Shown here: piece by piece, positions 13,901-64,000 of the stretch
How positions within the stretch are numbered: the stretch's first letter is position 1
Layout: every line of letters starts with the position of its first letter
From: Utricularia gibba
Lineage: Eukaryota; Plantae; Magnoliophyta
Reading direction: 5' to 3'
DNA: 64,000 nt
Assembly: GCA_002189035.1 (NCBI GenBank)
Contig: CM007989.1
Coordinates: forward strand, 5,766,001-5,830,000
The notes under the pieces: model-generated
What the model was told of the DNA's origin: nothing
Databases searched by the model: none
What the model saw: the letters and a program-made list of their open reading frames with translations, nothing else
Position numbers and translations under genes: made by a program

Positions 13901-14250
13901 TCTGCGTTTGAGGTTTCTCAAAATTTTTAAATTCCGTTGCTTTTGTGACATACAATGTCTACAAGAAACCCAACACCATCGTACCCTTAGGCTTCAATTC
14001 TATTAAAAATAAAGTTGCATATCTAAGGGAGTAGAATGAAGAGCTTTGCTATAAACTAGAGTGGTATGTGAGCTGTTAGGCCCACACCGGACCATCTCTG
14101 AGTGGCTCCAAGTCACAATGGAAGTTGATTATCTTGGACGTAAATGATATGCTCGTAGACATCATATTGAAGGGTGGATCGTCAAGGTCATGAATCTCTC
14201 CAAATGAATTCATATATGACCGATTAGGTACCTCTTTTATTAGTACAACA
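11000..14250 (-). mobile_element. Athila-like 3' internal remnant with ORF2/env-like fragment, interrupted by a solo LTR
   Basis: ORF 12069-12389 (ELFIVWCLLYKKPLNLEAILAKQM) resembles Athila ORF2-type proteins; boundaries approximate. Confidence 0.4.
12480..13975 (+). mobile_element. Solo LTR, copia Angela-like, 1496 bp
   Basis: TGTTGG...CCCAACA with perfect 5-bp TSD CCATC (12475-12479, 13976-13980). Homologous to 60263-61628 (inverted). Confidence 0.9.
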
Positions 14251-40110: not shown

Positions 40111-42535
40111 AGTTGTAAATTCCTCCCACCAATATTATGGCTCTTCATCATCCCCTACCCTGATCTCTCTTTACATTTAGTTTGTTGCATTTTATGTTTC
40201 GGTTCTTGCTATTTTTTTGAGTAATTGGAGTATTAATGGATTTACAAGGATGTTCTTTTTTTGTTTTTGCTCAACTATTCAATCACTACCTGACTTGCAA
40301 TCTGCAACTTGGTTTTACATCAGCAATGCTACACCCAAGATCAATGTTAACAAGCTTCATCTTTTGGAAGAAGATGTTGGCCTTGGCTTCAATGGAACCC
40401 CTGAAGCCATGAGTCACAACCCATGTTGTTGCTTTGTGGCTTGTCCTTTTGTGAAGGAGCATGTTGTGCCCAAGGGTCATTCCTGTCACTCTGTGCTTCA
40501 TATTCGCAATGCTTCAGCAACAAAAAAAACTTCAAAACTCGCAACATTGAACATACTCTTGGTGGGGGACAAGTCATGTCCCACAGACGACAGGTGTTTG
40601 AAGAATTTTAGTGTTTTTTGGACAATTTTCATAAAAGTAAATGCTAAGAGGCAAATTTTGTTTTGAAAGCAAAAGAAAAATAGACAAATGGTGACCTGGA
40701 AAAAAAACGAGGAGTGTAGGAAGAAATTCACAATAATATGAAGAAAGTCACAAATAAAGTTTCAAGAACTCCAGAAAGTTACTCATCTTCTTGGGTGATA
40801 CTCTCCTTTACTAGAAAGCCGATCCTTGATCCATAACGATTACACTTTTGAGATTCGTGATTATATCACACATTTAAAAAAAGAAAATAAGATGAATTAA
40901 AGTATAAGAACTCGAATTAAATACTCAATAAAAAATACAGTATGCAATAACATATGTATGAAGTTGAAAAAGCATGGTTTCATGCAAGATTCCTTACCAA
41001 AGTGTGTTCATGAAGACATAGTTTGACTCAAAGATGCCGAAAACTAAAAGACTCGATAAAACAAGGTGCTTAGGACGTTGGTAAAGCTTGATGGTAGAGC
41101 GGTTTTTTATAGGATAAAGATCGAATCATCTTGGAGGCTTAGATTGTCATAAAAATCTGTTCCACAATTAGTCAAAAGAAGGAAGATTGGCGATTCAAAA
41201 AAACAAGCAAATTGAAGGTGCAAAAGTGAACCACCACACTAATGGTGAACAAGGTTTGAGAAAACTAGTTGGGCGGTGATTATAGCGGGAGTAATTTTAG
41301 ACGCTTTAGTAGTCTTGATGTGGATTCAAGATGCTCTTCCAGAGTAGAGTTGATGTCCTTTTAAAGATTAGTTTTGGGATCTTTTGAAAGTTTTAGATAT
41401 ATAAATTTCATATTTAATATAAAAGAGAATATTATGTGTATTAAGTTATGTTTCCCCATACACTCTGATTCGTATTTTCCATTCTCAAAATGATAAAATA
41501 ATATTTTTACACAGCACATCTATTTTTTATTTTTTAGAATGAGAATGTAAAATGCTCATTCTCAAGAAGTTAACACATTGCAAAATGAACCTTCTTGGCT
41601 ATTTTTACGTTTCATTCTCATTCGAGCAATTTTTTTTCGAATAATACCATTTTTTCTTATCTCCTTCAATTTGTTTCTTCGAATTCTTTCTACAATTTTT
41701 CATTTTAGGTTATCGAGGAATTAAAAATCAAATCTGTTGTATGAATTTTTATTTTTATATGCATTGTAAAGTAATTTCCCATTTTTCAATACAACATATT
41801 TTTTATTTGGAATCTCTTTTATTGTTACAAAACATCAACTCATTTTAGTAATCATTCTCATTCTACTTTGTATTATCATTTTTCTGTTTGAAATATAAGC
41901 GAAAAATGCCTTAAAAATAAAATATCCTTGCATGGACATTATTATTCCCTTCTTATTTTGTGGGATATTCTTGGACTTTCAAGGCTGTTTAATGATAATT
42001 GCATGCTTGTCGGACATTGCAAATACACATCAATTCTAGAGCCTCGCCCTCGGTGTTATCTGCAACATTTAAATGGGTCCGGGGTTGAATCATGTTAAGT
42101 GCAACACAGAAAGAAAATAACAGCAATTATATTCAAAAAAATTATATTTATTTTTTCATTGGGGCAATTCGGACGCTGCCATTAAAATAGCCCAGCCCAT
42201 GGGGTGCATAACGGGCTACCCAATAATAAAGTTTGATTTAAAATGATATCATAGTGTAATCAGTATTTCATTTATCAAATTAGTCAACGAACAAAAAATT
42301 GTAGCTAAAATAGATATGTATGCAAATTTATTTGGCATGTCATAAGCTATCATTTAGAGTTCTCCTGGCCCGGCAAACTTGTGTATGGTCCTGGTCTCTG
42401 CAGACCGCAGTGCAACCAAAACACTTGCTGTTGCTGTCATCCTCCATGTGCATTTGGTGGCGAACGGATTGGGACCTTTTCTTTATCCCTCAAGTTATCC
42501 GATCAAAATACAAGTTTGAGCTCGCTAATCCTGCA

Positions 42536-44363
42536 ATGGCGATCGCTTTTTGGCGGTGGGGCCGTCATGCACGCAGGCTGTTGCTCTACGACGCCAACGC
42601 CAGACTGACCACCAACTCACGCTTTTTCTGCAGTCAGTCTTCGCCGTGGAAATCTGTGGAAGGTTTTGTGCGATGCCCGGCGAACGATGTCCCGTTGACG
42701 CCGATAAGCTTCTTGGAGAGAGCTTCTCGTGTTTACAGAGACCGCACTTCTGTCGTCTACGGTTCCTTGAGATTCACATGGGAACAGACTCACCACAGAT
42801 GCCTCAAATTGGCTTCCGCTTTGACCCACTTGGGCATTTCCGCTGGGGATGTGGTAAATTTTGTCGATACTATGCCAATTTCGTGTTCAGTTTTCTCCTA
42901 ACCGTTTCAGTGAACAGGTTGCGATGTTGGCCCCAAATGTCCCAGCAATGCAGGAGTTGCATTTCGCGGTTCCCATGGCCGGAGGCATAATTTGTACCTT
43001 AAACACGCGCCAGGATTCCACGATGATCTCTGTCCTGTTGCATCATTCTGAAGCTAAGGTGATGTTCGTTGATTACGAGCTGTTGGATGTTGCGCGATGT
43101 GCTATCGATTTGCTGGTAGAGAAGACTGCAAAACCTCCAGCCCTCGTAGTCATCCCTGAGCTAAACCCGGACTGTTGTTCAACCTCAGGATCTGATCTGA
43201 ATGGATCTTATGACTACGAGTCTTTATTAGCGAAGGGAGATGATAGGTTTCTCATTCGCCGGCCGGCTTCTGAATGGGATCCGATCAGTATAAATTATAC
43301 CTCCGGCACCACTTCTCGGCCTAAGGGAGTGATTTATAATCATCGTGGAGCATATCTGAATGCCCTGGCCACAACAAATATACATGGGATGTGTTCGATG
43401 CCTGTTTACCTTTGGACAGTCCCTATGTTTCATTGCAATGGCTGGTGTCTCATTTGGGGCTTGGCTGCTTTAGGAGGAACCAACGTATGCCTCCGTCGTA
43501 TCTCGGGTGATCAGATAATCAAGGACATCATCCACAACAATGTGACTCATATGGGGGGAGCACCAACAGTTTTGAACATGATCATCAAGGGAGCAGCCAC
43601 TCAGAAGCCTCTACCACAACGAGTAGACATAATGACCGGTGGTTCACCACCTCCGCAGCCTGTGATTTCCAAGATGCAGGAACTTGGCTTCAGGGTGTCA
43701 CACTTGTATGGTCTCACAGAAACATATGGACCCGGAACATCATGCGTATGGAAGCCAGAATGGGATAGCTTCCCCTATGACGAACAGCTGAGGCTGAAAG
43801 CAAGACAAGGGGTTCAACATTTTGGCTTGGAGGAAGTAGATGTTAGGGACTCTGTGACAATGGAGAGTGTACCAAGTGATGGAGTGAGTATCGGGGAGAT
43901 CATGTTTCGAGGGAACACCGTGATGAGCGGATACTTGAAGGATTTGAAAGCAACCAAAGAAGCCATGGGTGATGGCTGGTTGAGAAGTGGTGATTTGGGA
44001 GTGAAACACAGTGATGGATACATAGAACTGAAGGATAGACTGAAGGACATAATTATTTCTGGTGGGGAGAACATCTGCACTGTGGAAGTTGAAACCGTTT
44101 TATATCGGCATCCCGCAGTTTTCGAAGCTGCTGTTGTAGCAAGACCAGATGAACACTGGGGTCAAACACCTTGTGCATTTGTGAAGCTCAAGGAAGGGCT
44201 TCAAGTTGATTCTCAGGAGTTGATAAACTTCTGTAGAGATCATTTGCCGCATTATATGGCCCCTAGAAGCGTTGTTTTTGGAGACTTGCCTAAAACAAGT
44301 ACGGGCAAGATCCAGAAATTCATTCTTAGGGAGAAAGCAAAAGCCATGGGGAGCCTTTTTTGA
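42536..44363 (+). CDS. AAE2: Acyl-activating enzyme 2-like (AMP-dependent acyl-CoA ligase); exons 42536-42853 and 42918-44363; 587 aa
   Basis: [62 protein letters not shown]. Arg-rich N-terminal extension and C-terminus MGSLF, as in Arabidopsis AAE2 rather than the PTS1-bearing AAE1. Phase-0 64-bp intron. Confidence 0.92.
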
Positions 44364-46166
44364 CACGCGTTTCTGAAACTTTGAATGTTGTTCCCGAAGC
44401 TTATAAATATACCATGAGCATGAATAAATAATTCTTTGACCCTGTTGCCCATCGATGAGAATCCTGAAGGCACTTGTAGATCGGTTTTGTCTTTTTAGAA
44501 GCATTGAATTTAGGGATATGATCGGAGAATACAAAATCCTAGACATCGTAGCATTAAAATAGAATGTAAATAGCAGTAGATAGAGACTAGACTGGTGAAA
44601 AATGACCATTCACAAACAAAGATCCATATAACCAGTGGAGGCAGACGGTCCACTTCAAATATCCCATGATTAGCCTTCAACTACATGGTCATACTATACC
44701 ATACTGCTAGGAGAGTAGGTTCACACCAATTATAATTTTTAAAGTTAATTGTGACAAAGTGCATAGAACAAGCAAACTTGATTGGTTGCTACACTTGGGT
44801 TACTGGAACTGTTGTCAACTTTACAAGCCAATTATACGTGACTCATACAGAAAAAACCAGTAGGGAGAGTTATTCTTTACATAAAAGGCAATCAGAACAT
44901 AGTTACAAGGCTATTGATGACTCAACCTATTTTATAAATCCAAAACAACAAAGTATATCTTATTGCAAAACATTAAACACCCTACCCTGTAAGGCTTTTC
45001 AAAACAATAAAAGTATGTTTTATAAAGAAGAAACTCATAAACTATAAACCAAAGAAAAGATCCTTCCAAGAAACCAAGGAGAACAAATCATATATGTTTC
45101 AAAAAAACGTTATGAGACTATTTCTTATTTTGAATAGTAGCATTCATCTCACTTTATTTTCTTAATACATATTACTTCTTACAATTTAAGATGTACAAGG
45201 TATTATTCCCCTAAAAACCTCATGGTTTTTTTTCTACTCCTTTGCTTCCGCTACATTATCCCCCAATATTTATCAACCTACCTGAGTCACCATTATCCTA
45301 TCCTAAAGTTGGCATATAATATTTTCTATAGATTGCAATTGCAACCCTTCTAATGTCTCTTATTACTTGTGTTGTCTTTTTTTTTACTCATATTGAGCAT
45401 AGAGCTTGATTATTGAGATAAACGAATCACTTAATTGCATATACAACACTCCTAATCTCTCAAGCAGGAAAATATATTCACAATTGGCTAACAATCGCAT
45501 TCATGTAATGATGAACATTATCTTTATATAATATTATTCATTTCAAACACTTAACTTTACAATTTCATATATTAGCTTCCTAGATAATTGATGAAAGTAA
45601 ATTTTCTATAGGTATCACAGGTCTACCTATTTTCCTCATCAAAACATTTATAAGCTGAATAATCAATTCAATAATATTCTATGAAAAAATAAATATAATA
45701 GCAGCAAGTCTTAGTGGATCCACTAAGGCCTCGTTTGTTAGGTGGGTTTAACCCTCTAAACCCTTGGGTAAAAAGTGTTGTATATGTTTGTTGGGGTGGT
45801 TTAGTAAAACACAAGGGTTTGTATTATCCCGAATTAAACCTGCAGCTGCTTGTTTCACAAAACCCACGTGTGAGGTGGGTTTTGAGAAACCCATCTCACA
45901 CAAATACAACTTGGTCGATAATACCCTTCTACTCCAAAAGCAAATTCGCAACAGTGAATCTGTGTATTTGTTCATCCTCTTCAAAAATAATCTGTTGGGT
46001 TTTTGCAGGTACATGGTGAGTGAATTCGAATTCTGATATTTTGACGAAAATCCATATTTCAATTTAAGCCAAGAGTACTTTTTTTTTGTTTCGCATATGA
46101 TGGAGTCGGTTTTTTTTTTTTCTGAAAACTGCAGTAGGTTGTGCATTGCTTATTGAGGCTGTTGCA

Positions 46167-47495
46167 ATGGTTTCAAAGAAGATTATTTTGGTTGCCCTTG
46201 CTGCGGCACATTGTGTTGGTCAGCATCTATGTATTATGCGAGTTATGATTGTTATAATGTTGCATTTCTGTTGTACACCAACCGATAGGAGAATTCGGTT
46301 CTCATACCGAGAAAAGATACTACGACAAATAGAGCATTTGACTGCCTTATTATCTGATTCAAGGAATGCTTGTCTTGAAAACTTACGATTAAGTGCAGAT
46401 GTCTTCAACAAGTTATGTTATGTTATTCGAAGTAATGGTAGACTAACCACTTCAAGGTATGTCGATGTTCCAGAGCAAGTTGCATTGTTTTTGGGTATTT
46501 TAGTTCATCACAGGAAAACAAGGCAATAGAAATTTGAATTCATGCGAAGCAGCTGGACAGTGTCCAAATATTTCAATGTGGTATTGTCGGCGGTGCTATC
46601 ATTGCACCAAAATTTACTTAAGACACCTATGCCAATTGATGTTTCTGATCTCAATTCTAGCTTCAGATTTTTCGAGGTATGCAAGAAGATTTTTCATCGT
46701 AGTTGTGGATGTGCAACGTGTATTCTGCATTCTGTAACTTTCTGCTCTATTTTTAAGAATTTCTTGGGTGCATTGGATGGTTCATATTTTCAGGTGAAAG
46801 ACAAGAATCAGGATAAATCAAAGTGGAGGAATCGTGTCCACTAATGTGTTAGGAGTGTGTGATGATAAGCTCATGTTCATCTATTTGTTGTTCGGTTGGG
46901 AGGGATCCGTTGTTGATAGCAGGGTGCTGCGAGATGCAGTTTGTCGACAGAAACGCAGAGGGATTTCTAGCACCCTACAGGGGTGCTGTTGATTAACTTT
47001 CATGTATTCCATTTTTTTGTAGGGCATTATTACTTATATGATAATGGCTACACAAACGCAGAGGGATTTCTAGCACCCTACAGGGGTGTTCGGTACCATC
47101 TGAAAGAGTGGGGTGCCGGGTCCATGGCTCCACAGAATGCGAAGGAATATTTCAACATACGGCATGCTTCTGCAAGGAATGTTATTGAGAGGGTATGGGG
47201 TCTAATGAAAATGAGGTGGAGTATTTTACGAAGTTATAGTTTTTATCCTATTAAAACACAAACACGTATCATACTCACATGTGCCCTGCTTCACAATTTT
47301 ATTCGGCGAGAAATGCCAACTGATCCATGGGAAGAGGTCATTCCGGAAGAGTACCAAAATTCGGATTCACAGGAATATGAAGATGATGAACATATTTCCT
47401 CCATAGGAAACTCAGAGGAGTGGACACATTGGCGGGATTCAATGGCTGAGATAATGTTTGCGCAATGGAGAGAGACCACACGAAGAAGGGTATAA
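46167..47495 (+). pseudogene. Harbinger DDE nuclease (HARBI1/ALP1-like), disrupted
   Basis: LRLSADVFNKLC, VPEQVALFLGIL, GALDGSY, TNVLGVCD, GWEGS, YLYDNGY..FLAPYRGVRYHLKEW, HASARNVIERVWGLMKMRW. TAG at 46527, a frameshifting deletion near 46835, intron 46677-46757. Confidence 0.92.
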
Positions 47496-47941
47496 GGTGT
47501 ACTAATGAATCCTGATATTTTATTGGTTTGGCTTAAAGACATTTTATTTCATTTTCCAATAGTTGATAAGCATTGCGTTGTGTTGTATTCATATTATGCA
47601 AACACATCAGTTATTCCAGACATGATTTGCTTCTTACATTGGGTTATTTCCCACGGTGAACTGCCTTATTTATGCAGGACTGTTGTCACAGCAAATGTGA
47701 TACAGTCACTGGAAACTAGAATTTGCAGTGCCTGGAAATTTATGATAGGATTGAAGGATGCTTCAGGTTTCCATACACTGTTGACTCATACGTCTGGGTG
47801 CAACTATTGCATGCTCTACACTATCTACATGTACATTGGAAGAATTGCATTCTAGGCACTGTAAATATCTAATCTCGGTGCCTAGATGAAATGTGTTCCT
47901 AGCACCGCAATACACCGTTATCGGTGCCTGGAAGACCAGTG

Positions 47942-48357
47942 TACCAGGCACCGCAAAAGTTTTGTCTCGGTGTCTACAAGACACCCCTTGTAGGCACTGC
48001 AAAACGCTGCTCTCAGTGTCTGGGTGACATGTGTCCCAGGCACTGCAGAATGCCGCTCTCGGTGTTTGGAAGACACGTTATTTTAATATTTTTATTAGCG
48101 TTCGATCCTTAGTTATACTTTGGATCGAGCGTTAATATAAATTTAAAATAAACAAATATCCACTCGATTCGAATGAAACCAAAGGATCAAACGCTAATAA
48201 AAATATTAAAACAACGTGTCTTCCACACATCGACGTCCAAGAGCGGCATTCTGCAGTGCCTGGGACGCATGTCTCTCAGACACTGAGAGCAGCGTTTTGT
48301 AGTGCGTACAAGAGGTGTCTTGTAGACACCGAGACAAAACTTTTGCGGTGCTTGGTA
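47942..48357. repeat. Long fold-back (arms ~190 bp, AT-rich loop ~30 bp)
   Basis: TACCAGGCACCGCAAAAGTTTTGTCTCGGTGTCTACAAGACACC... pairs with ...GGTGTCTTGTAGACACCGAGACAAAACTTTTGCGGTGCTTGGTA. Confidence 0.9.
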
Positions 48358-48872
48358 TACACCGAGACCAAAATTTAAAATTATAAATTACAGAATGTTT
48401 CCTTTATGGGTTTAAATTAGTTCGAGATTACATAACATTTTTTTAATTTTATATATATGAATTTATTTAAAATCACCTACTTTTTTACGTTAATTAAGTT
48501 TGATTTTAATTTTATTAACTATTTTAATACCTAATTAATTGATATATATCATATTCATTTAAATTCAAGTAAAAGGCTGCTCTCAAGGTCTGGGAGACAT
48601 GCATCCCAGGCACTCCAGAATGCCGCTCTCGGTGCCTGGAAGACACGCTGTAGACACTGCAACCTTTGAAATAGGTGCCTGGAGCAATCACGGGCCGGAA
48701 TGAATATTAGGCCTCGCGTATTTGGGCCTCATAACAAACCCTCCGGCCCAGTCCTCACCCTCCTTCACCACGCACCTAATCGCTGCACACTGGAAAGCAT
48801 GGCACACCGTCCCCACCTTAACTGCATGGTCCCTCCCCCATTTACTTTCCTCTGATCTGTCTATTTCAAGAA

Positions 48873-50713
48873 ATGCTTACTTCCAAAAAACTCCAACTTC
48901 GGTTTGCCATCCCAGAGACGTATAATCTATGGGACAAGGCAAGCGATGAGACAATTGACGGTGTGGTTCCACCCAGGGTGGGAGTAATCGGGTTTTCGGT
49001 GTCCACCGAACACTTTCGGTGTGGACTTCGCTTGCCACCACCACCATTCATATGCGAGTTGCTGGCATGTTTGGAGGTCCCATTGTCCCACCTGACACCC
49101 CACTCAATCGCTCATGAGTGTGTGCATGGAGGAACAAATTACTTCGGCCCTACCAGTTTTTTTTTGCCGTAAGTGTGTGCATTCGAAACTGAAAAACTAA
49201 TCATTTCTCGCTGAAAGGTAAGCCAGGTATTGCACTTGTGAATTCTATTCGGAGTGGATATGATGCATGGTGGACAAGCTTCATTTGGGTGTGTCCACCA
49301 GAAGACCTCTGAATTCCAACTACTCTCGGCTCCTCCAAGAAAATTGGAAAGGCAAAGGGTAATGTGTGATGTAGTATGGTTGCATGGATAGTGTACTGTG
49401 ATTTATGATATTCGATTATCCATGTTGTAGGATTTGATAAACTATCGAAGCAGGGGCTGGATGCCTTGTTGACTATGTTTAGTGAAAAGAGTAAGGCATT
49501 GAGTGACATAGTACCCCCTGTGGTGGACGCTGCCGGTACTCGCCACTTCTGCTGTGGTCAAGGAAGAGTGATACGCGAGCGATCAAAGCCTGACGACGTG
49601 ATCATTGAGGAAGAGATGTCACTAGCATTTGCATCTGATCGACAACAGGATGTAGGGAGCAATGTGGAGGAAGACAACTCGCAACCAACTGCTAGTGTGG
49701 ATGTGGACAGAATCCTGGAAGAGAATGCCCAACTACGTGCAAGGCTAAATTGGTATGAAAGTAGTTGGGCATACACTGGCCCCAGTTCATCGCCCAGGCA
49801 ACAAGTGTGCAAGCTCCTTGTGTTGGACGTCAACAGAGTGCTAGCAGACATTGTCTTCAAAGCCAAGTACCAAAGGTTGCATCGAAAACCAGATGCTGTG
49901 ATATATGGGAGAAATAGTAAGACACCGTAACATTGTCTCATGGCTGTGTCATGTTCAACCAATCCATTTTTTCTTGGTTTGGCAGTCTTCCTCAGGCCCT
50001 TTGCTCATGAGTTCATCGAATGGTGTCTTGCAAACTTTGATGTCGGTATATGGTCTTCAAGGGGCGCGTAAGTCCCACTCCATGAAATCTGCAGAGCATG
50101 TGCTGCTATCTAATACTATAACATCTGTCTATGTTCTATAGTACACAACTACATGACATCACCAAGTGGGTGTTTGGGCCAGATGCATACACCTTGCTGG
50201 CTTTCATATGGGATGCATCGAAGACCACTGAAACGCATGTACGTGTGCATGATAATGGGTCAAAAGCTGCTGTGTTGAAGGAGTTGTCGTGGATTTTGGG
50301 GGAAGATGAAGGCTTCTTGGGTTGGTATGATGCAACCAACACCTTACTTATTGACGACTCCCCGTTCAAGTCCATCAGAAACCCAGTTCAGTCTATCTGC
50401 GATCATATGGTCTGATACGCATGTTTCCTACTGACATTTAGGTCATGGTCTTATTGTGCCACAGCATGACAACGCTGTCTTCCCGACGCCATACCAGTAC
50501 ATGGATGCAAGAGATGCTGCATTAGCTGAGTTTGGAGAAATACGCATCTTCCTTCAAGGTCTACTAGAAGCAAATGATGTACCGAGTTTCGTGAAGCATG
50601 CACGAATTGGATAGCCTCCGTTAGATGCTACTCACCCACTGTGGGATTATTACAAAGTTCTTGCTTTAACATTCATAGCATGTAACAGTAGTTTGAATTT
50701 CGGAACATTATGA
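48873..50713 (+). pseudogene. Chimeric cargo gene: Tat extra-ORF-like N-terminus spliced to an FCP1/NIF (HAD-fold) domain; introns 49359-49430, 49917-49985, 50068-50141, 50386-50464
   Basis: FRCGLRLPPPPFICELL..PLSHLTPHSI and HFSLK..DAWWTSFIWVCP, then KLLVLDVNRVLAD, IFLRPFAHEF..FDVGIWSS, NTLLIDDSPFKSIRNP|HDNAVFP, PLWDYY. All four introns are GT-AG and phase-compatible. Stops near 49310 and at 50612; frameshifts around 49110-49200. Confidence 0.8.
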
Positions 50714-50905
50714 TGTTACTCACTCTATTTTAGTTATGGGTTTTTCAATATACACTTCATAAATTACAAAAAACTAAACATACGTTAAATATTCTTATAT
50801 GCATATTCATTTAAAATAATACATTAATTTAATATTTTTATTAACATTCGATCCTTAGGTATGATTCGGATCGAACCTTTTTTTATTTTAATATTTTTAT
50901 TATCA

Positions 50906-51216
50906 TTCGATCCTTAGGTATACTTTGGATCGAATGGATATTTATTTATTTTAAATCTTAATTAACGTTCGACCCTTAGGAGCAATTTGGATCAACTATA
51001 CCAAACAAGGGAACACAGGTGTGGTTTATTCATAAACCGTGCCCGTGTACATACCTAGCAGCACCACAAGGGCACACGGGCGTGGTTTATGCAGAAACCA
51101 TTCCCGTGTGCTCTTGTTAGGTATACACGATCCAAATTGCTCCTGAGGGTCGAGCGTTAATATTTATTTAAAATAAATAAATATCCACTCGACTCGAATC
51201 ACACCTAAAGATCAAA
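50906..51216. repeat. Second long fold-back, same repeat family as 47942-48357
   Basis: TTCGACCCTTAGGAGCAATTTGGATC pairs with GATCCAAATTGCTCCTGAGGGTCGAG; 51148-51219 is a direct copy of 48123-48200. Confidence 0.85.
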
Positions 51217-51244
51217 CGCGACTTACATGCACTCAGTTGGTGCA

Positions 51245-51742
51245 TTGATGCTAGGCACCGTAAGAGCATATTTGTGGTGTTTGAAAAGATATAATGCATG
51301 TCTTCGAAGAGCAATCCAGTACAGTCAATACTTAACACCTAACACGCGAGAGGTTGGGCTGAGTGCCACACACATGCAGTTTACTAGCGCATCGATGCCA
51401 GGCACCGCAAGAGCATATTCGCGGTGCCTTAAAAGATATGATGCATGTCTTCGAAGGGCAATCTAGTGCAGTCAATACTTAACACCGAACACGCGAGAGG
51501 TTGGGCTGAGTGCCACACACATGCAGTTTACTAACGCATCGATGCCAGGCACCACAAGAGCATATTCACGGTGCCTGAAAAGATAGGATGCATGTCTTCG
51601 AAGGGCAATCTAGTGCAGTCAATACTTCACACCTAATACTTGAGAGGTCGGGCTGAGTGCCACACACATGCAGTTTACTAGCGTATCGATGCCAGGCACC
51701 GCAAGAGCATATTTGCGGTGCCTGAAAAGATAGGATGCATGA
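51245..51742. repeat. Tandem array, 147-bp unit, ~3.4 copies
   Basis: AAGAGCATAT recurs at 51262, 51409, 51556 and 51703. Confidence 0.92.
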
Positions 51743-51973
51743 TAGGCACTGCAACCTTTATTTGCGGTGCCTAGAAAGGGACGAGTCCTACTGTTCTGCT
51801 TTCTATAGGTTACAGGGGCTTGATAAATATATTTGGTTACACAAACTAAAATCAGATAGCAGCTACTCATGGAAAACATGTACAGCGTAATATTGTCATG
51901 CAAAGCAAAATGATCGTCATGATACATGGACATCATAAATGGATATGATCAAAACAACAAAGGAAAAACAACA

Positions 51974-53055
51974 TCATAGACCTCTCACAATCCCATCCAC
52001 CATAACCTCACGTTCTGCACTATTGCTGTCCAGAAAAAGCTGTAGCTTTATGGGGTTACTCAAGATGACTTCAGTCACTCCTAGACGCTGCATTGTAGTT
52101 AATTGCAATGGCATCCCTCTGATGATGTCTGCAGCAGCATTTCGACGTTCCCGTAGGTCATTGTTTTCAGCAGTAAGTATTTCTCCCAGTTGTGCGATGG
52201 CATCATTTGTTCGCTTACTCATTTCTTTCAACTCCTCCACCAAGCTATCAAGTTCTGGACCTTGCCTCCTCTTCTTCTTCCTAGGTTCATCACCACTGGT
52301 TGGTGTAGTGTGATTACCTGTGCGACCTCCAGGAGTCCCTCCTAATGAGGGATACTCTTCATATGTAGAGGATGCATCATGTGATCTTTGTTCACCATTT
52401 TTTTCCGAGTCAACCTCCACTTCAGGATACTCAAGAAGATGCACTGGTTGTTCCACATCGGCCATAGAGTCATCAGTCTGCTGTGTTGCATCAGCAGCAT
52501 CAGGGACACATTCTGCAAATTCTCAAGTGGCTCTATCTTTTCCAAAGATGATGCACCAATCTGGATAGTAAGGCCAACGCCTAAACCACAACAAATTGTA
52601 CACCTTCTCATTGTGCTACACATGTAATCCATAAGTGTACATTAATAATCTCACAGGAACTACCTACTACATATACATTAGAACAACAATACCTGTTTGA
52701 ACTCCACCCACAAATCCTCACTAGCATCTACCATGTTTGTTGAGTTATCATACCCGGTACTTGACTTGTTGAGAAAGTCAGATAGGGCATTGTAATCTTT
52801 TTTCCAGCTATGAATCTTTGATTGCATGTGGGGAGTGCCTCTGATATCTGAACCGGGACACAATTTGAGGAACGCCTCCTCTAGTGCTTGAAGATAATTA
52901 CCTTTGAATCCATTCTCTGCTTTCCACCCACCTTGAATGATATCCTTTAGAGCGTGGATCAGAAAGCACTCTTCATCAGGTTTCCACTGTCTTTTGGTCT
53001 TAATGTTATCACCACTTCTCACACGTTTTGTTGTAGGCACGTTTGCTCCAACCAT
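51974..53055 (-). pseudogene. Harbinger Myb/SANT-like DNA-binding partner; exons 53055-52693 and 52615-51974
   Basis: RQWKPDEECFLIHALKD..GWKAENGFK..YL..LE; SKIHSWKKDY; WCIIFGKDRAT*E (premature TGA at 52523-52525); LQLFLD..SAER. Confidence 0.9.
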
Positions 53056-53949
53056 TTCTGCAACTAACACATAAGTGCACAACCCATGACATAACCACAA
53101 TGCATGTGTAGCTCAATATAGCACAAGAAGTATAATAACATTATATGGGTTTCAGGGGCACAATTCACAGCCATATTACTCAAAAAACATCACACACACT
53201 AACACCCAGTCGCTCAATCCACGTGGTTAAGGTTATTCAACCGGCAAATGAAATAAACGCCTCAAATTCGAGAAAAAAATACCTGGTGCATCACCCAATA
53301 CCCAATTTTTCGGTAGATCAGACTTGCTCCCAGAGTTGCATGAGCCGAAGATCCATGCACATCGTAACTTGAGGGTTTCGAATTCCCCAATCTGAATCTC
53401 ACGTTTCTACATGTGGGGTCAAAATAGGATAATAAGATATTATATTATATATAAAGGGTATATTAGGAAATTCATATTTTCTAGTATTGAGAACCTATGC
53501 ATAAACCCTTCTAACAAACATACAAAATTGATAATCCCATATTATTGAACCCTATCTACCAAACACATACTTCATTCTAAACCATTATTTATGGAATACA
53601 ATAAACTAAAATAATCTAAACCCTTTTAATTTAAACCCACCTAACAAATGAGGCCTAAGAGTAATGAATTTTCAATTACATTTCTTTAAAATATTGTTAA
53701 ATTAAAAACACTTGAATGAATATTTTAAAACTGATATAAATAAATTATTTAATACTTTAATTTATATGTTTGGTATTTATAAACATTGAAAAATATTAAT
53801 TAAATATAATTCTCAAAAATATGTTTGTTATTTATTATTCAAATTCATTTCATTGAATTATTTTATTAAACCAATGAATATGTGATATTTTCTTCATAAA
53901 GTCGTTTGAACATTACATGTAATTTGCATCAAGTGAGTTTTTTTAAGAG

Positions 53950-54285
53950 CATATCTTTTTATTTTAAATTTGCATTATTCATAGTTTTATCCTTATGTGT
54001 TATTTAAATTAAATGCCTTTTTTATTTTAAATTTATATAAGTGTTATTTGGATCGAGTATCTATTTTTTTATTTTAAATTTATATTATGCATCATCCGAA
54101 AAAATGTTAGTTACATTGAGTATCTATTTTTTATTTTAAATTTATATTATGCATCACCCGATGTTATAGTATTATTTAGATCGAATGACTCTTTTATTTA
54201 TTTTAAATTTGTATTATATATCATTTGATCTTTAAATATTATTTAGATTGATTGCTTATTTTTTTATTTTAAATTTGTGTTATAT
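53950..54285. repeat. Degenerate AT-rich tandem repeat (~45-70 bp units)
   Basis: TTTTATTTTAAATTT occurs six times, often with GATCGA. Confidence 0.55.
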
Positions 54286-55182
54286 GAGATTTTTTTCAAG
54301 TAGTATTGAAATTTTTTATCTCCCATGGAATGAATAAAATAAAAGAATAGTTTAAATTAAAAATATATATGATAAAAAATAATTCAAAAAATATATAGAT
54401 ATTGTGTTAGCTATTTTACTACAAAATTCATTTGAATTTGAATTTTACTATAGGCATTTAATGTTTTATTTTTTGAATGCTTTAACCTCAATTGACTTAT
54501 ACATTCATTAATATCATTTCTAATTTTCTTATATATATGTGCCCCATTTTTCAATCTTTTTTTGAATAATGAATCAGATTTTTTAGACAATATTTATCAC
54601 ATAGGATTCTCAAGTAATAAAAAATCATTCGTTTTCCTAAAAAATTGACTCAAATACATCATTTTTTATTTTTTCAATGCCGTAGCCTCAATTGGCTTAT
54701 ACATTGATAAATGCAATCATTTATTTCTTTTCCTAAAAAAATCATATTTGGTTATCATCCATAATAAAAAAAAAAGAAAGATTAAAATACTTTTACTAAG
54801 ATATGAAAAACCTCACATTGATAATTATAGAAAAAAAAAGCAAAAAGAAAAAAGTTGCTCATATGTGAATGGAAATATATTGCATAAAAAAATAATCTAA
54901 AATACATTGTAAATCAAATAAAAAGGATGAGTATCAATGTCAACATGTTCAATCAAAACTGAAAAAATAAGTATTTTTGTTTTCAAAATATCTTATATTT
55001 TCTCAAAATACCTTTTAAAGTGAAAAAATTTTACATAAATAAATAGAAAACATCAAAAATGAATTGGTGATACTATGAAAAGTGGGAATGATAGTGAACT
55101 ATAGGCATTTGTCCAAAAAAATGTCTATTATAGTAATCTTCAACGTCTTGCATCAATCATAACCTCTCAAATGTATTGTCAA

Positions 55183-56205
55183 TGTTGCGTGTCGTTTCCG
55201 CAACAAATTTTAAATATTTTAAACATAAAACACTATAAAGCGTAGTACGAATATCGATCTCAGGGAGTTGTTTTTCGTGAAAAGTGTTTGCAATCAACTT
55301 CTACAAAATGTCACGGTTTTGTAAAAGGGGGTTTTTAAGATGTAGAAATGAAAGATACAACCTAAGTAATGGGCCTTGACTACGGGACGCAGTTCCTGGG
55401 AATAAGACTCCATCTCCTTCCTTTGTCCGTCCTTGCCTTGGTTTTCACTGATTTCTTCTGAATAGCTGGTTATAGAAGCAAGGAATAGCCTACTCTCTCT
55501 TATACTCTGATTGACAAGGAGGCACGGGAATAGCCTCATGTGATTCCCCCTTGGACGATTAGGAAGACAAAAGGATTGCCTTCGATTGCCTTCAAAACCG
55601 AATTGTACGCATGTGCCCAGCTGTTGCCAATGGCCAGTGGCAGGTCCGAGGTCACAACATGTCCACTGTCGCGGTACCTAGGCCACAAACAATCTGCTAA
55701 TTCCCTCAAACCAGCAGGGTTGGAGTCGGTGCTCTTCACCTTGATCTTCACCAAAATCCGCGAGAAGTGGCCTGCTACTCATGGACCTTGACTAAGAGTC
55801 ATTACAGAAATACTGTAACAATACGCGTGGAAGTATGCGGAATCCGAATGGAATTCAGTGAAGAACTGAGTGTATTGCTCAGGACTTGAAAGGAAACTTC
55901 ATCTACTTCCCAGAAACTAAAGTGTGACCAGTGTCAGTCTTCCGCCCACAATCATTCCAACTTACGTACAAGGCACGAAAACTCAGAGTCTGACCACCTG
56001 CAATACTCATGCAACTCTCCTGACAGTCTCCTGACATGCCTCGGTCAAAGTGTGAGAAAAAATGCATAAAATATACACAAAATGGGAAAATAAGAATTTT
56101 CTAGTAAAAATCAAATACTTAATAATAAGACTCATAATTGGGCGACTTAGCACTTAATTAATACATAATAATACCTAAATAATAACTAGAAAATGACACT
56201 TAACA
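55183..56205 (-). mobile_element. Solo LTR, TGTTAAGTG...CGCAACA family, 1023 bp (internal deletion)
   Basis: Perfect TSD GTCAA (55178-55182, 56206-56210); homologous to 38015-39334. Confidence 0.92.
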
Positions 56206-59200
56206 GTCAATAAGGCATTGATGATAATTTCATATTTCACCACCTTTACCAAATGTATTATATTCAAATTTCTCATAAGTGTATGACTCAAGATGAATAC
56301 AAGTATGCATTTGTAAATATAAGTTAAATTTATGATGTTAAAATAGAAGGTAGTTTGCAAAATTTAAAGTGTAAAAGATAACACTACTACATTTCTAATA
56401 TACCTGTAAAGCGAATCATTGTCAATTATGTGTTATTAACATTGTAAGACACATCCCACTCAAATGCCAATGGCTTCATCTACTGTATTCGAAAATCCAT
56501 TTGAGTATTCCTATCAATTAAGCCCTAAAAAATGATTAATATAAGTAACATTAGTTTTTAAAAATATTGATAATATATACATTATATAACACCTTACGTA
56601 AATTGCAACATCAAAGTGTTCAATACACCAATTCAACAATTCAACAATTCTCTAGTAAAAAGTCCCAAATACATTCTATATTAAAAGAAATATGTAAGGA
56701 GCTAATTTTGATAGTTAATTTAAAAAATTTATCAAAATTAATTAATGTGATAAAATAATCAAGTTGTCATGGAGTCAAAAAATAATTTATTTTACCTTCT
56801 TGATGATATATTTTCATATTCGAACTATGAACACGATTGTCTATCAAAATAGTTTTATATAATGATAGATCACAAAAGATCTCATTTATATCAAAGATAC
56901 ATATTTCCTTTCAATTAGGAGATCATTGGGGATTACTTCAACTGGTATAACTTACTCATCAAACGTTGATGTCACTCCATGTTGTATGTTTATATTTTCT
57001 AGTTCTTGTTCTTCATCTTTTGTAACATATACATCATCTCTTGGCACATTATATCTTACCGTACGACATACAAATCGGGGCTCAATGTCTCAAAATGATA
57101 TTATTTTACAATTGAAAAATTCAAATAATGATTTTTTTCTACATTTAAAATGATAATAACTATATTAAATGAATAAAATATGAGTACAAATAATAAATGT
57201 AGTGCATTTAATAAAATGTAAATTAATTAAAAAATACAATTACTTAGCAAAACAATAAAGATATATAAAATCAATTATTTATAAATTAATAGGTTACTCT
57301 TAAAAAAACCAAACTAAGTTTCAATTCTAAAATGCATTTATAGAAAAATTAAATAATTTTTTATAATTTTTAGCTTGCCTGTCATCTTCTTCAACTACCA
57401 TTCATGGAAAATCAAATCAATAATTACAAGGTAGTGCAACTCATATGAAGTATGTTGTCCAATCATTATTCCCACTTTGTATACCCCTAATCAATGAAAT
57501 ACAAGTCTATAGTGAAGTGTATAACCATTAGTTTTTTTATTATAAGTACATACATTTATAGCAAAAGAAATATCAAGATCAAGGAATATGTTTTCTTCAT
57601 TACAAATCTCAAGAAAGTCTAGAACGTACCGTATTGATTTTGAGGTCAATTGGATTAACAAAACATCAATACAATGAAAATTGAAAAAAATAAATGGCAA
57701 GATTGGCAAGTGAAATCCACAACAAAAATATTCAGTAAAAATAGCTATATCATTAGTATCAACTCATTTCGGTAATAAATTGGTAATCTTCTCATAACTA
57801 ATTTTGTTGAATATTTTGTATTCATTTAAAACACCAAAATATACCTTGAAGTTAAAATAGTATCTATTTATTCTAGAAGACATAAGTGAAACTCATATTA
57901 AGTTAAATAGATCACCAAAATACACTTATATACTTATGAATAATATTTTTAAAAAAATATTTTAAAATAAGCTATTTTTTGGATTCATAAAGTCAATTTT
58001 GGAAAACCACAATTGTTAGTTCAATTTGTAAATTTGGATTCCCAATGACCATTGAAATGCTAACTTTGAAAAAGAATAAAAAAAAACTAGTAAAAGAAAT
58101 TGCATAAAAATATATTGTGCGGGTGTGTTTTGGGTGAGGAGTAGAAATGGTATATGAATTTCTATTTATAATTTATTACTCAATTGTAGTGTTAACGATC
58201 TCTAAAGAACCCTAATTCCTCAAAAATTATATATAACATAATCCTAATTTGTAGTTGTCTAATTAAATTATGATATTTTATATATAAAAAAGTATAGCTA
58301 GTAAATATTAATCAGAATTCATCTTAAATATCGAAAAAGAAATTTTAGGGGAAATATCATAAAATATCAAAATTAACATAATGAAATATCACATTTTAGG
58401 GGAAATATTCTAATATGCATTACTAAATATTACAAATAGCCAAAAAAAAAATATTTTTTAAATTTCTTTTTAATAAATACAACTTAAATATAATTTAGCA
58501 TGTTCATTGAATTTTTTACACCTTGTAAATGTTTTTTTTCATACAATTATATTTAATTAACATAATAAGATTCAATGTAATTACATTATTAAATTATAAT
58601 CGTATTGTTTTCTCTGATGCATAATTAACACAAGATGGAGTATGACTATGTCAAAATATTTATAAACTCAATAATGTTTTTGTTATTTTAAAGTTATTTA
58701 ATTCAAATTTAAAATTATAAACTTAATATAAGTTATTTAAAGTTATTTAAAATCAAATACTAATAATTTGGATTGAATAGTTATTACTTTTTATTATTAA
58801 GAATACCATTTTTTTCCGATTATGTATTTTATATTTTGTGTTCCATTTTATGAATAATTATGGGTTATTTTCAATAATTTTTTCTATATTTTTAAAAAAT
58901 AGATTTTGACTGATTCTTACAGATTTTACTTTATCAATTTTTTATTCATATCATATCATTTGTGAATGTTGAAAACAATTAACACAATAGTTATGTCCAC
59001 TATCAATTATTCTTCTTTATTACAAGAAAATTTGCAATTTTTTTATTTTCCAAGTCCATGGCTTTTGAGTTCATTATGTATAGAGTATTTTTTAGGGGTA
59101 ATATATTCAATTATAGAAGTTAAATTTCTTATGACAAACCCCCTATACAAATCATACATTTTTATATAGATATTATTGAATGATCTATAATTCGAATTAT

Positions 59201-59874
59201 ATGAATTAATTGAAGTTTAAGACTCTCTATATGAAATTTCAAACATGAGTGCATTCACAAAATTTTTCGAAAATATCATACGATGAGTTTCAAAGGTCTA
59301 TAACCATGATGACCAACCGAGTCGAAGGGATGAATGTAGTACTTCATGGAACTTGGCATCTTATCATTAGTGTACTTGTGCAGGTATACTCATCTAAATT
59401 GTTCATATTTATATTATTTTATACGCATCAACTTAATATCATTATGAATTTACATGCCAATTTCACAAGATGTAAGAAGTACATTTGTGAAGAATTGGAA
59501 GAAGTAACAAAAGCTCAATCCAATAATGAAACATTGACCAAACAAGCGTGTAAATTATTTGATCACTAGGATAAACCTATCTCATATGCATGGGTAGAAG
59601 TTTACAATTACATAAAAATGATCATCCATGTACAAACCCGTAGGCATCAAAGTAACCCAATGAATGATAATGTGTGTGTCATATGATTAAAAAACGACAA
59701 TTATAAATGTGAGAAGTGGCAAAATTATGGAGTACCATGTTCATATGTTAAATAGTTATTCATTAAAGAAAATATCTCTTCTTATTGAATAAATTTCCAT
59801 AATGTAGGTTTACAAATTGTTGAATATCGACCTGATAAAATGCGTTAATATGTTACTTTTGGTTCAACAATATA

Positions 59875-62409
59875 TGATAATACATATTTTTGAGTGATAG
59901 AGTATATGGAAATTACTCATATTGGGGTACAAAAATCATGTTTTATTACCTAATTCTATATTTTTATGCATAGTATCGTAGTTATGTTACTTTAGTTTTA
60001 ATTGGGACTAAATCTGCGATGTCAACAACATGCATCACATGTCGACAACACAAATCCCAAGGAGCCGAATATGAACAGTGTAGTGGCAAAGAATGAGGCA
60101 GAAGTATGAAAAGGAATACATACAAAATCCAAGGAAGAAAAAAGTAGAATTTCGGACAAAAATGACAATAAGGAGGGAGAGAGAAAAAGATCTCCCACAT
60201 TGGAGACACACGAAAAAATTCTTTCTAGAGAAGGTTTTTTTTTGGGGGGGGGGGGGGAGAAGTGTTGGGTTTCTCGTAGACATCGTATGTCTCAAAAGCA
60301 ACGGATAAGAATATTTTGAGAAACCCCCAATGCAGATCTTGGAATACCTTTCAGAGGACTCCGTTGTTCACCAACCGCCAGTAGCAGACGGCCTCTATGG
60401 TATCTACACGTGGAGCACTCCGTCGATAAACTTATCAAGGCTTTTGAATGCTGGTCGAATTTCTCAGGTGCTAGTAGAGAAAAACGCCTCATTGTGGATC
60501 AGTCTTAGAGAGCACGAAGACCTTGGAGCAGATCTCAAGATCTAAATCTTTTTTATAGATATATTGTGACATATCAAATCCTATCTCCATAAAGATCTTA
60601 TCTTGTGGAGACATGTATATGTGCCAAATCATATATATATGAGATCTTTTATTTTGAGTTTAATCAATATTAATCTCAAAATAGCTGTCTATTTAATTTA
60701 TCCACTTTACCAATTACATCTCATGTAATTGTGTCATTCTATTTTATATCGATGAGTGACTTCACTATTGTGTGTGACCCTATAGGCTTCTTCAATCAAG
60801 GCCGTAATAATGGATTTATTAATTAACTCTTAATTAATCAAATCCGTCATTATCGATCATGAGTGATGTCTAGCAACATATCATGATCCCCAAAATTAAA
60901 GAATAATCAAGTGAACTGATTGAGCCTTTTCATGACCAGCCACCATGCAATGAACAACTTTCATCATACTTATATCTCATTCGATACCAGAACATGGTTG
61001 TGTGTCTTTTTTATGTATCGAACTTATAATTGCATTCAAGCACTAATACTCAATGACCCACTCAAACAATTCGAGTGTCATTACCCTGGGCCCAGGACTT
61101 ACTTTTAGGCAATTATTTGAGATATGATCTCATCGCTAACATGAGTGATGAATCTTTTATTGATCAATCAACTATCTCCAACCTTAAGGAGTCACATCTC
61201 TACTCATCCATACTAGGCAAGCCATGGTTAGGCTCCCATTAGCAATGAGCCAAAATGTGAGCTTAAGATCAAGATAACTTTGTTGATCTCAAGTCCAAGT
61301 TTACTTGCACGGCTGTCATATTCGAGATCTTGCTACTGACACTTGGTTAGCTTCCCATAGTAGCATCTCGAAGATGAGTTATCTAGTGAATCGATTCTCT
61401 AATCAACACCCACACATAAGTTCTAGTAAACTAATTACATCAATTGTGAAAACCATTGCCTAAACTGTTTAGGGAACTCAATGTGTGCCAGCTTATCCGT
61501 ATTTGTGATAGCACATAGATCAAGTAGAGGATTTTATCAATGATGTAAACTTGATCACAATTCAAGGTAAACATCAAAGGATAAGATTTGCCAATGAATT
61601 GATTGTCTGTAGAACACATACACCAACAAGAAGAAGGAAGACGAACAGGAATGAAGCTGATGTTTGAAGACCATTTTCTATTTCCAAAGAATATTAGTCT
61701 TAGCTAAGAGTAGCTAGCGACATTTCCAACTTTCTGTTGAACTTTTAAATTCCCTGCTTGTTTATTTTCAAGTAGTCGATTGTAAGATGAGTACAATATG
61801 AATGATGTGTTCTTTTCTATTTTCGTTTATTTTAAGCATGAGTTGTTAAGTACTTAGGGGTGTCTCGAGATGAAAAGAGGAGATTTGTGCTAGTTAATCT
61901 TTAGACCTAATTAACCATAAGTTACACTACTTCCTTAACAAACCAGGATATATCCAGGAGGGGGAAGTAGTGAAACCCATATTAACAACCCTAATTAGAG
62001 GTAGACTATAGATTAGGGGAAAAACAAGAGTCCGGGTAGACCTAAACCTTGTATGTTATGTGTATGATTTATTGTTTGTTTGAGCATGTTTAGTAATAAA
62101 CATACATCCTCTAGAAATCTTAAGGCATCACTCATTTCATTTCATAAACAACCGAGTTCCCAAAGATATTACTTTTCTTTACTGTATTTTGTTGTAGTTC
62201 TGCCTTAGTCCTAATTAAGACCAATTCTACCAACGTAACACTGATTTCTTGCATTGAGCTTCACATAACAAGCACCTAGCTCCTTGTGTTCGACCCTAGT
62301 CCACTATGCTCATATTTTTCATATGATTTAATGTGAATTAGGTTTATAAATTTTATTTGATAAGAGAAATTTGCAATTCTAACGACGTTGCAATATTTTT
62401 CGTTTATCA
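59875..62409 (+). mobile_element. Athila-like solo LTR carrying a nested Angela-like solo LTR
   Basis: TGATAA...TTATCA termini; degenerate TSD ATATA / ATGCA; colinear with 19461-20030. Confidence 0.85.
60263..61628 (-). mobile_element. Solo LTR, copia Angela-like, 1366 bp
   Basis: Perfect TSD AGAAG (60258-60262, 61629-61633); inverted homolog of 12480-13975. Confidence 0.92.
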
Positions 62410-64000
62410 ATGCATCACTACATTTTGCTCACAATTTCAGCCACTTCAACCCAAGATTCATTCGGCATGAGGGTCATTCACTCTAAAGTATGATTTGATA
62501 CATAGAAGAATTTTTAGTAAAAGTCGATATCATAGTAAATGATTTCAAATGTCAATGGATAGAGGTATTGGGTGAGACGCTAAAGACAAATTAATGAGAC
62601 ATACCAACCAACCTGATACTTAATCACCTTCACCTATACTAAATTATTAAAATGATTCAATAAAATGAATTTGAATAATACATAACAATGATTACATATT
62701 GTTTAGAATTATATTTAAGTAATATTTTTCAATGTTTATTATAATAATTTATATTTTATAAATTAAAATATTATATAATTTGTGTATACCAGTTTAAAAA
62801 TATTTATTCAAGTATTTTTTTAATTTAAAAATGTTTCAAATAAATGTAAAATAAAATCAATTGAATCTAATAATTGTGGTAACTTATCCAATCTAGTATA
62901 TTTGAAAATATGAATTTTTAAAATATCAATAAATAAAGATTTAATAATAAAATTTTGAAAATTGAATTAATGCTTTCAAATTAATATAATTGATTTGAAG
63001 GAATAGAGATTTATAATTCTAAAAAAACACAACGATTGTTATTTTTTTTTATTAAATTTCATCTAAATTAATTCAAATAACATAAATTCCTATTATATTT
63101 TATTCAATTATATGCTAATATTGTTAAATATTGATTATTAAATTATCATTAAAATAAATTACCGTTTAAAAAAATAAATTGTTGCAACAATTTTATAAAA
63201 AGCCTTTGAAATAATTATTTTAAATACGTAATATATTATTATTTTTTATTAATAATAATCAATCTGTTTTTTATAATGAATAATCTTTAGTTAATAATTT
63301 TGATATTACAAATACAGATTTCACAAAAAAAGAATTCTGTTAATATTATAATAATAATTATGAAGAATCCATTTTTCTCAAAATCATTATTCTATATTAT
63401 TAAAATACAAATTATGATATTTATAATATACTCAAAAATAAAAAGTTGGGTAGTATTCTATATTTAAATATACACAGTTCACACAATAAGTACTTTTATA
63501 AAAGATATTTTTTGCATAAATAGTTTTCAGAATGATCTCCCACACTTTTACTCATAAGTTTTAGGAAAATTATGTTCCCCTAAAAACTTTTCCCTGGCTG
63601 ATTGCCAGCGAGCCTCCCCCTACTCGTTTAACTCTCTCCCCTTTTCTCCTTTTTTTTTTTTTTTTTTTTTTGTTCCCTCTCCAATTTCAGTTTCTCGTGA
63701 GGATTCGCATTTGTTGTTTTGAAACTATTCTAAAAAATATCTCATGGATTAGATAAATTGCTTGGTCTAGCTCAAATGGACTAGTCCTGTAAGGACTTCA
63801 TAGAACAATATACCACTTCGGCATCACATTAGAGACATATTTGGTCCAATTAAGTTTTCCTTGTGCAAAATTGGTTACAACAATTTTTTATTTTTCAGAT
63901 AAGACTAAAAAAGTCTATTAAATGGTTATAGACTAAGTGTTGGATATAATGGAGTTGTTACAAAATAAGCTGTCATGACAACAATCCACATAAGTCTTTT

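Follow-up and report, generated by a model that had tools for sequence, protein, structure and literature searches.

A dead copy of a predicted Transposase_28-NIF fusion gene on DNA transposons of Utricularia gibba

Plant DNA transposons are known to have retained only a few captured host domains as working helper genes. The main example is the ULP1 protease domain, which has been transduplicated into the Mutator-like elements known as Kaonashi or KI-MULEs (reviewed in PMC13317346; grapevine survey in PMC2528002). Other Mutator-like elements, the VANDALs, encode the VANC anti-silencing proteins, whose function has been shown experimentally (PMC5735166, PMC10398659), and the capture of gene fragments by Pack-MULE-type transduplication has also been reviewed (PMC13317346). 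Among long terminal repeat (LTR) retrotransposons, 23% of the Retand elements, which belong to the Tat lineage, carry extra open reading frames (ORFs) with a Transposase_28 domain (PF04195; PMC6317226). Here we describe a locus at 48873-50713 in a 64,000-nucleotide stretch of Utricularia gibba DNA (contig CM007989.1, positions 5,766,001 to 5,830,000; hereafter the window), where a Transposase_28 domain, an acidic linker and an NLI-interacting factor (NIF)/FCP1-like domain are predicted to have formed one spliced gene.

We found that this locus belongs to a five-exon fusion gene family that resides on DNA transposons, that the NIF part of the gene is of host genomic origin and that the copy at 48873-50713 is dead. 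We consider it likely that an old accessory gene of plant DNA transposons, a Transposase_28-linker-NIF fusion that was not formed here and whose protein would have helped its carrier, is represented at this locus by a pseudogenised copy. A first-pass annotation, made from the sequence of the window, had described an in-frame chimera lying inside a DNA transposon. The in-frame fusion and its location both stand, but the idea of a chimera specific to this locus does not, as the gene is a decayed copy of an older and recurrent transposon gene.

Structure of the fusion locus

On the forward strand, the interval 48873-50713 resolves into five exons of 486, 486, 82, 244 and 249 nt, separated by four GT-AG introns of 72, 69, 74 and 79 bp. 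The A+T content is 57-65% in the introns as against 51-57% in the exons. Exon 1 (48873-49358) starts with an ATG at 48873 and encodes the Transposase_28 domain in a broken frame. It is linked to the linker exon by intron 1 (49359-49430, agg/GTAATG...TGTAG/ga), which is 65% A+T and has the highest T content of the four introns (42%). Removing this intron restores a glycine codon and bypasses two in-frame stops. Its donor and acceptor are good plant sites and are matched in phase, both being phase 1. Exon 2 (49431-49916) encodes an acidic linker, in which 21 of 111 residues are aspartate or glutamate, followed by a coiled-coil-like stretch and the start of the NIF domain. Intron 2 (49917-49985, phase 1) lies directly upstream of an FxRP motif, and intron 3 (50068-50141, phase 2) follows a WSSRx motif; between them, exon 3 (49986-50067) encodes the motif FDVGIWSS. 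The core of the NIF domain, including motif IV (LLIDDSP), is encoded by exon 4 (50142-50385), and its C terminus by exon 5 (50465-50713). The intron between these two exons (intron 4, 50386-50464, phase 0) follows an NP motif and has a weak GTTCAG donor. The boundaries and phases of intron 1 given by the first-pass annotation proved exact, and the three further GT-AG introns have the sizes that it reported. Judged by the sequence, the model of an in-frame fusion in five exons stands.

The start of exon 2 contains a stretch at 49493-49558 (VPPVVDAAGTRHFCCG) that is faintly like the start of the Transposase_28 region at 48948-49025 (VPPRVG...TEHFRCG). This likeness is not significant alone (E = 0.3-2; reached by 2 of 200 shuffles) and may represent a small internal duplication. 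The stretch has no counterpart in the second copy of the gene, described below, in which exon 2 is shorter by about 64 nt here.

Searching Pfam with the first 99 codons of exon 1 yielded a match to PF04195 over profile positions 3-40 of 69. The score, 26.2 bits, is exactly equal to the curated cut-off for this family (26.2 bits), and the match is marginal because the frameshift described below splits the domain. In an Atlas look-up with exon 1, Transposase_28 was present in 22 of the 30 nearest clusters (score 0.96), and a word search with the same exon returned no candidate. The 5' part of the locus had been likened in the first-pass annotation to a Tat antisense ORF at 4759-5385 on the reverse strand of the window. 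This Transposase_28 ORF, which lies in a retrotransposon-like region, scored 20.6 bits against PF04195 and aligned with exon 1 in two collinear blocks. The first block is 32% identical over 37 residues. In the second, WWxSFxWVxP, 7 of 10 residues are identical to the ORF at 4762-5115 (-) (E = 5e-6), and the block is also found in the second copy of the fusion gene. The likeness thus stands at the family level, in these two blocks, but the antisense label was not confirmed, given that the ORF shares its strand with an integrase-like fragment at 2398-2784 (-). When the Transposase_28 part of exon 1 was used in a tblastn search, the second copy matched with an E of 2e-9, as compared with 1.0 for the retrotransposon-like ORF.

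The integrase-like fragment carries a YHPQSNG motif, gave no Pfam match at E 0.01 and shares its strand with a coiled-coil ORF at 3445-3894 as well as with the ORF at 4759-5385. The layout of these three features does not suit a simple picture of an antisense ORF behind pol. Elsewhere in the window, a short Transposase_28-like stretch at 16548-16601 (+), GISIPPPPFISSVYSLL, is not collinear with the NIF fragment at 14029-14403.

The copy at 48873-50713 is dead and no longer makes protein. Exon 1 contains one frameshift, at approximately 49112-49120, and TGA stops at 49190 and 49310, and the sum of the exon lengths (1547 nt) fits a single frameshift. Only one lesion lies outside exon 1, a premature TAG at 50612 in exon 5, which falls on the conserved glutamine of the host FGQ motif. 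Similarity to the profile of host NIF proteins introduced below resumes beyond this TAG (profile positions 382-395) and runs to a TGA at 50711. Because the TAG coincides with a conserved glutamine and the similarity continues after it, the CAG-to-TAG transition and the gene end at 50713 proposed in the first-pass annotation are both reasonable. The TGA and TAG stops that it listed are present, but we found one 5' frameshift instead of several. Its argument for a promoter from GGCCC site-II-like motifs is weak: upstream of the gene there are two site-II-type motifs only (TGGGCC at 48723 and GGCCCA at 48745), compared with an average of 0.36 in GC-matched tiles.

The NIF/FCP1-like half and its host origin

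To characterise the 3' half of the gene, protein searches were run exon by exon. Exons 2, 3, 4 and 5 matched, in this order, a profile built from 86 host NIF proteins: exon 2 at positions 179-217 (E = 1e-8), exon 3 at 220-244 (E = 5e-13), exon 4 at 252-330 (E = 3e-23) and exon 5 at 333-379. Exon 3 alone scored 18.8 bits against PF03031 in Pfam, under the cut-off of 21.8, and the Atlas look-up of the NIF part gave NIF a score of 0.91. A full HMMER search with exon 4 retrieved 171 proteins, which were plant NIF proteins wherever checked. The relatives retrieved are 'FCP1 homology domain' proteins of plants, which have often been given the name TIM50 automatically.

The HAD motif II (WSS in exon 3) and motif IV (in exon 4) align with conserved columns of the host proteins. 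Motif I, at 49826-49840, reads D-V-N-R-V and thus differs from the canonical D-x-D-x-(T/V). The host subfamily likewise has D-[LVI]-N-G-[LIV] at this place and not D-x-D-x-T (126 motif instances), and the NIF-like domain of the locus, like this subfamily, is without the general-acid aspartate. Its motifs and profile matches place the NIF part in the NIF/FCP1 fold family, but it is not predicted to be a classical phosphatase.

The introns of the NIF part provide evidence of how it was acquired. We obtained host exon maps by exact protein-to-genome threading in four plants (rice, Vanilla, Citrus and a fourth), and five introns are common to the NIF region of all four mapped host genes. Introns 2, 3 and 4 of the locus correspond to host NIF introns 1, 2 and 4, with identical position and phase in the four plants, and the 82-nt length of exon 3 recurs in three of the four mapped genes. 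The locus lacks host intron 3 (after FCW) and host intron 5 (before GPGG). The coincidence of all three NIF introns with host introns supports the proposal, made in the first-pass annotation, that the NIF part was captured as DNA and not as cDNA.

The NIF part is 44-48% identical to the host proteins that we fetched, whether monocot or dicot, whereas identity to the Vanilla protein is 50-63% for most of the host proteins. The difference suggests that the transposon-borne sequence has had a long history separate from the host proteins. By an eye count on the profile alignments, 45 of 57 strongly conserved host positions are kept at an overall identity of approximately 45%. This is the retention expected if most of the divergence arose under constraint, and may be taken as an indirect sign of it.

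Carrier elements and sister copies

The fusion gene is enclosed by a complete PIF/Harbinger element at 45727-53655, in a window whose DNA is approximately 37% G+C and rich in transposons. The left TAA target-site duplication and the 25-bp left terminal inverted repeat (TIR; GGCCTCGTTTGTTAGG...) occupy 45724-45751, and the right TIR and its TAA duplication occupy 53631-53658; 24 of 25 bases match between the two TIRs. The element encodes a transposase exon (46983-47492, +; DDE_Tnp_4/Plant_tran, Pfam E = 3.6e-13) and a Myb/SANT-like second Harbinger gene (52678-53097, -; Myb_DNA-bind_3, Pfam E = 7.7e-11). It therefore combines the DDE_Tnp_4 domain, the Myb/SANT-like gene, the short TIRs and the 3-bp TAA duplication that define PIF/Harbinger elements, which bears out the earlier placement of the gene inside a DNA transposon. 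The transposase and Myb-like genes have their 3' ends facing the fusion gene, which lies between them. Approximately 1.4 kb upstream of the left end of the Harbinger element lies an ordinary host gene, encoding an AMP-binding enzyme (42320-44363, +; PF00501, E = 8e-60; PF13193, E = 4e-23).

A second copy of the fusion gene, AT-rich and heavily decayed, was detected on the opposite strand at 57838-55079 by tblastn (E = 2e-9), by Smith-Waterman alignment and with the host profile. Its Transposase_28 blocks lie at 57838-57626 (E = 2e-9) and 57500-57429 by tblastn. They are followed by an acidic P-R-D-D-V stretch at about 57044 and a D-I-N motif at 56892-56884, both read from the sequence, and then by an exon-3-like NIF piece (56642-56598), a LAFEWDVS piece (56470-56447), an exon-5-like piece (56310-56233) and, beyond an apparent insertion, a C-terminal NIF piece (55150-55079). 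The Smith-Waterman score was 107 against a best shuffle of 47, three blocks beat 200 of 200 shuffles, and the host-profile matches are collinear. The order and orientation of the Transposase_28 and NIF parts are the same in both copies, their spacing also recurs, and both retain a portion of the linker in which P-[DR]-D-D-V precedes a run of acidic residues. Moreover, both copies read through the sites where host introns 3 and 5 would lie, and this shared trait speaks for a single ancestral fusion gene. At the DNA level the two copies show no similarity, so their relationship is old and does not reflect a recent duplication. The first-pass annotation had named, as a sign of chance juxtaposition, that the two halves should never co-occur elsewhere; in the second copy they do. 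Between the profile matches at 56310-56233 and 55150-55079, a GC-richer block of approximately 1 kb (55200-56200) seems to interrupt the last exon of this copy.

The element that carries the second copy (53660-62866, approximately 9.2 kb) adjoins the right end of the Harbinger element. It is bounded by TIRs of approximately 210 bp, at 53660-53870 and 62644-62866, with a mean column identity of 84%. On its forward strand, a SWIM-like CxC...CxH motif was recognised by eye at 59687-59752, along with a TNxxExxN motif at 59249-59566. Pfam searches with the pieces of the second copy and with the putative transposase returned nothing, and no target-site duplication was found for this element, which is probably Mutator-like.

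A third, truncated copy at 14029-14403 (+) covers exon 3 together with the coiled-coil stretch and the beginning of the NIF domain. It is 43% identical to the first copy over 65 residues (E = 5e-11) and matches the host profile with an E of 0.0017. The coiled-coil stretch common to the first and third copies is not of host origin. Together, the second and third copies indicate that the fusion is recurrent and not a one-off chimera. Just upstream of the third copy, at 13600-13990 (+), lies a repeat that is also present at 60035-60500 (-) in the long-TIR element; its translated stretches include GGYHRGRLLLAV and HTMSTRNPT. This repeat may be an insertion that severed the 5' part of the third copy.

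Competing readings and related systems

In our working model, the ancestor of these copies would have been a five-exon gene encoding approximately 515 residues, with a Transposase_28 domain at the N terminus, a linker of acidic and coiled-coil character and a NIF/FCP1-like HAD domain at the C terminus. Its NIF part would derive from the genomic DNA of a host gene, one of the plant subfamily with D-x-N-G-L, as opposed to D-x-D-x-T, as motif I, and would have kept three host introns and lost two. The fusion would be older than the split of at least two copies in the window, the one in the PIF/Harbinger element and the one in the long-TIR, probably Mutator-like, element. The presence of copies in two different elements indicates a gene that moves along with transposons and originated elsewhere. 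The same gene is found in independent, diverged elements (the second copy and the third fragment) without similarity at the DNA level, as would be expected of an accessory gene. The ancestral elements would have expressed the fusion protein, which is proposed to have helped its carrier.

Several observations weigh against this model. No protein with both domains was seen among the 93 of the best 150 HMMER matches for which Pfam annotation was examined, all of which had NIF and none of which had PF04195. Likewise, the best 120 proteins from a word search, which used an alignment of the Vanilla host protein and the exon rows, were all NIF-only, and in Atlas look-ups the Transposase_28 and NIF clusters were separate, with no cluster containing both. 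The combination of Transposase_28 and NIF that the first-pass annotation suggested looking for in protein databases was therefore not encountered there, where only host NIF proteins were retrieved. Nor did other searches find it: blastp of the exon 1 pieces against 242 fetched proteins gave nothing, a word search with exon 2 gave nothing in the 88-282-residue range, and the 151-residue ORF that starts from the ATG at 49475 was not on record in an exact look-up. This absence is a weak negative, since masking of transposon genes is common and query length restricts the word search. In addition, the splicing of intron 1 and the expression of the gene are predictions from the sequence, and the second copy is too decayed for intron 1 to be placed exactly, showing a gap that is AT-rich and full of stops, with a TGTAG acceptor in a similar position. 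The Mutator-like assignment draws on TIRs of approximately 210 bp and a SWIM-like motif seen by eye, with Pfam empty. The missing second aspartate of motif I makes classical phosphatase activity doubtful, and the proposed role in helping the carrier is argued by analogy with captured transposon helper genes.

One alternative explanation concerns the unit that moved. The fusion gene might have entered as a nested, Pack-type non-autonomous element (approximately 47838-51788), with the Harbinger element acting only as its host. The gene is bracketed by two palindromic repeat arrays, one upstream at 47838-48690, composed of 46-bp GC-rich and AT-rich units, and one downstream at 50821-51788, composed of AT-rich units, a 143-nt palindrome and 147-bp tandem repeats. 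The AT-rich units are 59-62 bp long. The arrays share the GGCACCG/CGGTGCC motif, with 10 of the 14 sites in the window falling within them, and the long-TIR element that holds the second copy has the same AT-rich units directly inward of its left TIR. These arrays could be the subterminal binding-site arrays of a nested element, or sources of hairpins. The unit lies exactly between the Harbinger genes, with the 3' end of each facing it, which would also fit such an insertion. However, neither a TIR pair nor a target-site duplication could be defined at 47838 and 51788, and we regard a nested element as possible but not as the expected outcome.

Other alternatives question the fusion itself. 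If the locus comprised two separate transcription units, the NIF gene would start at the ATG at 49475, the Transposase_28 exon would be a small gene of its own or a dead remnant, and no fusion protein would ever have been made. The spliced NIF frame is indeed open from this ATG to the TAG at 50612, intron 1 was deduced from the nucleotide sequence alone, and all of the lesions but one are in exon 1. By contrast, intron 1 has good sites with matching phases, belongs to the same size class as the other three introns and has the highest T content, and the arrangement of the two domains recurs in the second copy together with the shared part of the linker. We therefore find two separate genes unlikely. 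A chance juxtaposition, or a local chimera of a retrotransposon fragment and a captured NIF fragment, might be suspected as both kinds of sequence are common in the window, with Transposase_28-like pieces at 4759-5385 and near 16548. This is contradicted by the second collinear copy in a different element, by a Transposase_28 module that is far closer to that copy than to the retrotransposon-like ORF, and by the phase-matched join; the absence of DNA-level similarity further argues against the second copy having arisen by segmental duplication. Chance juxtaposition or a local chimera is thus highly improbable, and a decayed copy of an old transposon accessory gene remains the reading that we favour.

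If this reading is correct, the NIF-like domain would probably have served as a phosphopeptide-binding or weak phosphatase module directed at a host phosphoprotein, for example the C-terminal domain of RNA polymerase or a silencing factor, as judged by analogy. A broader proposal, which we put forward tentatively and consider rather unlikely, is that Transposase_28-NIF serves as a mobile helper and has passed between unrelated superfamilies of DNA transposons (PIF/Harbinger and Mutator-like), that it has its N-terminal domain in common with Retand elements, and that it acts on a host phosphoprotein to favour transcription of the carrier or its escape from silencing. The value of the dead copy lies in marking a fusion gene family. 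Were the interpretation confirmed, it would provide a second case, after ULP1, of a captured host domain kept as a helper gene, and a new way into the interplay of transposons with transcription or silencing in the host. Here a phosphatase-like domain would be joined to one otherwise typical of the extra ORFs of retrotransposons, across transposon superfamilies, and the case would give a first hint at the role of the unexplained Transposase_28 domain.

We found no paper that mentions both PF04195 and PF03031 and no description of such a fusion gene, and a literature search for NLI-interacting factor together with Mutator-like elements returned nothing relevant. A 2026 review of gene capture (PMC13317346) covers ULP1 in Kaonashi and VANC but no case involving a phosphatase, FCP1, NIF or Harbinger, and a 2026 atlas of Arabidopsis transposon products does not mention phosphatase, FCP1 or NIF.

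The locus can be compared with the sources of its two domains. It has the same Pfam domain as the Retand extra ORFs, with both conserved blocks present. In those elements, however, the ORF lies inside an LTR retrotransposon, whereas here the domain is the first exon of a spliced gene inside DNA transposons, followed by NIF and situated between Harbinger TIRs beside the DDE_Tnp_4 and Myb genes; its sequence is also distant from the retrotransposon-like ORF of the window. With the host FCP1-homology proteins, the locus has in common a collinear domain, an asparagine in place of the second aspartate and three introns. It differs from them in having lost two host introns, in lying within transposon TIRs, in being broken and in its N terminus, as the Transposase_28 domain was found in none of the host proteins tested.

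Among transposon-encoded systems, VANC is similar in being a non-transposase accessory protein, a role that we propose here by analogy, that aids an element against host control. The likeness is functional, with no sequence relationship claimed, and the fusion gene is known here from its sequence, in contrast to the experimental evidence for VANC. Like the fragments carried by Pack-MULEs, the NIF part is host genomic DNA with introns inside a cut-and-paste transposon; unlike such one-off fragments, it retains a whole domain with most of its conserved residues, and the same fusion occurs in copies that diverged anciently. A further parallel is Kaonashi, in which a host enzyme domain was also captured by a DNA transposon, lies in a spliced accessory gene beside the transposase and is present in many copies. 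In our case, the captured domain is NIF/FCP1-like instead of ULP1 and is fused to Transposase_28, the elements that harbour the gene are a PIF/Harbinger element and a second one with long TIRs, and the one, indirect sign of conservation under selection is the set of retained positions in the NIF domain.

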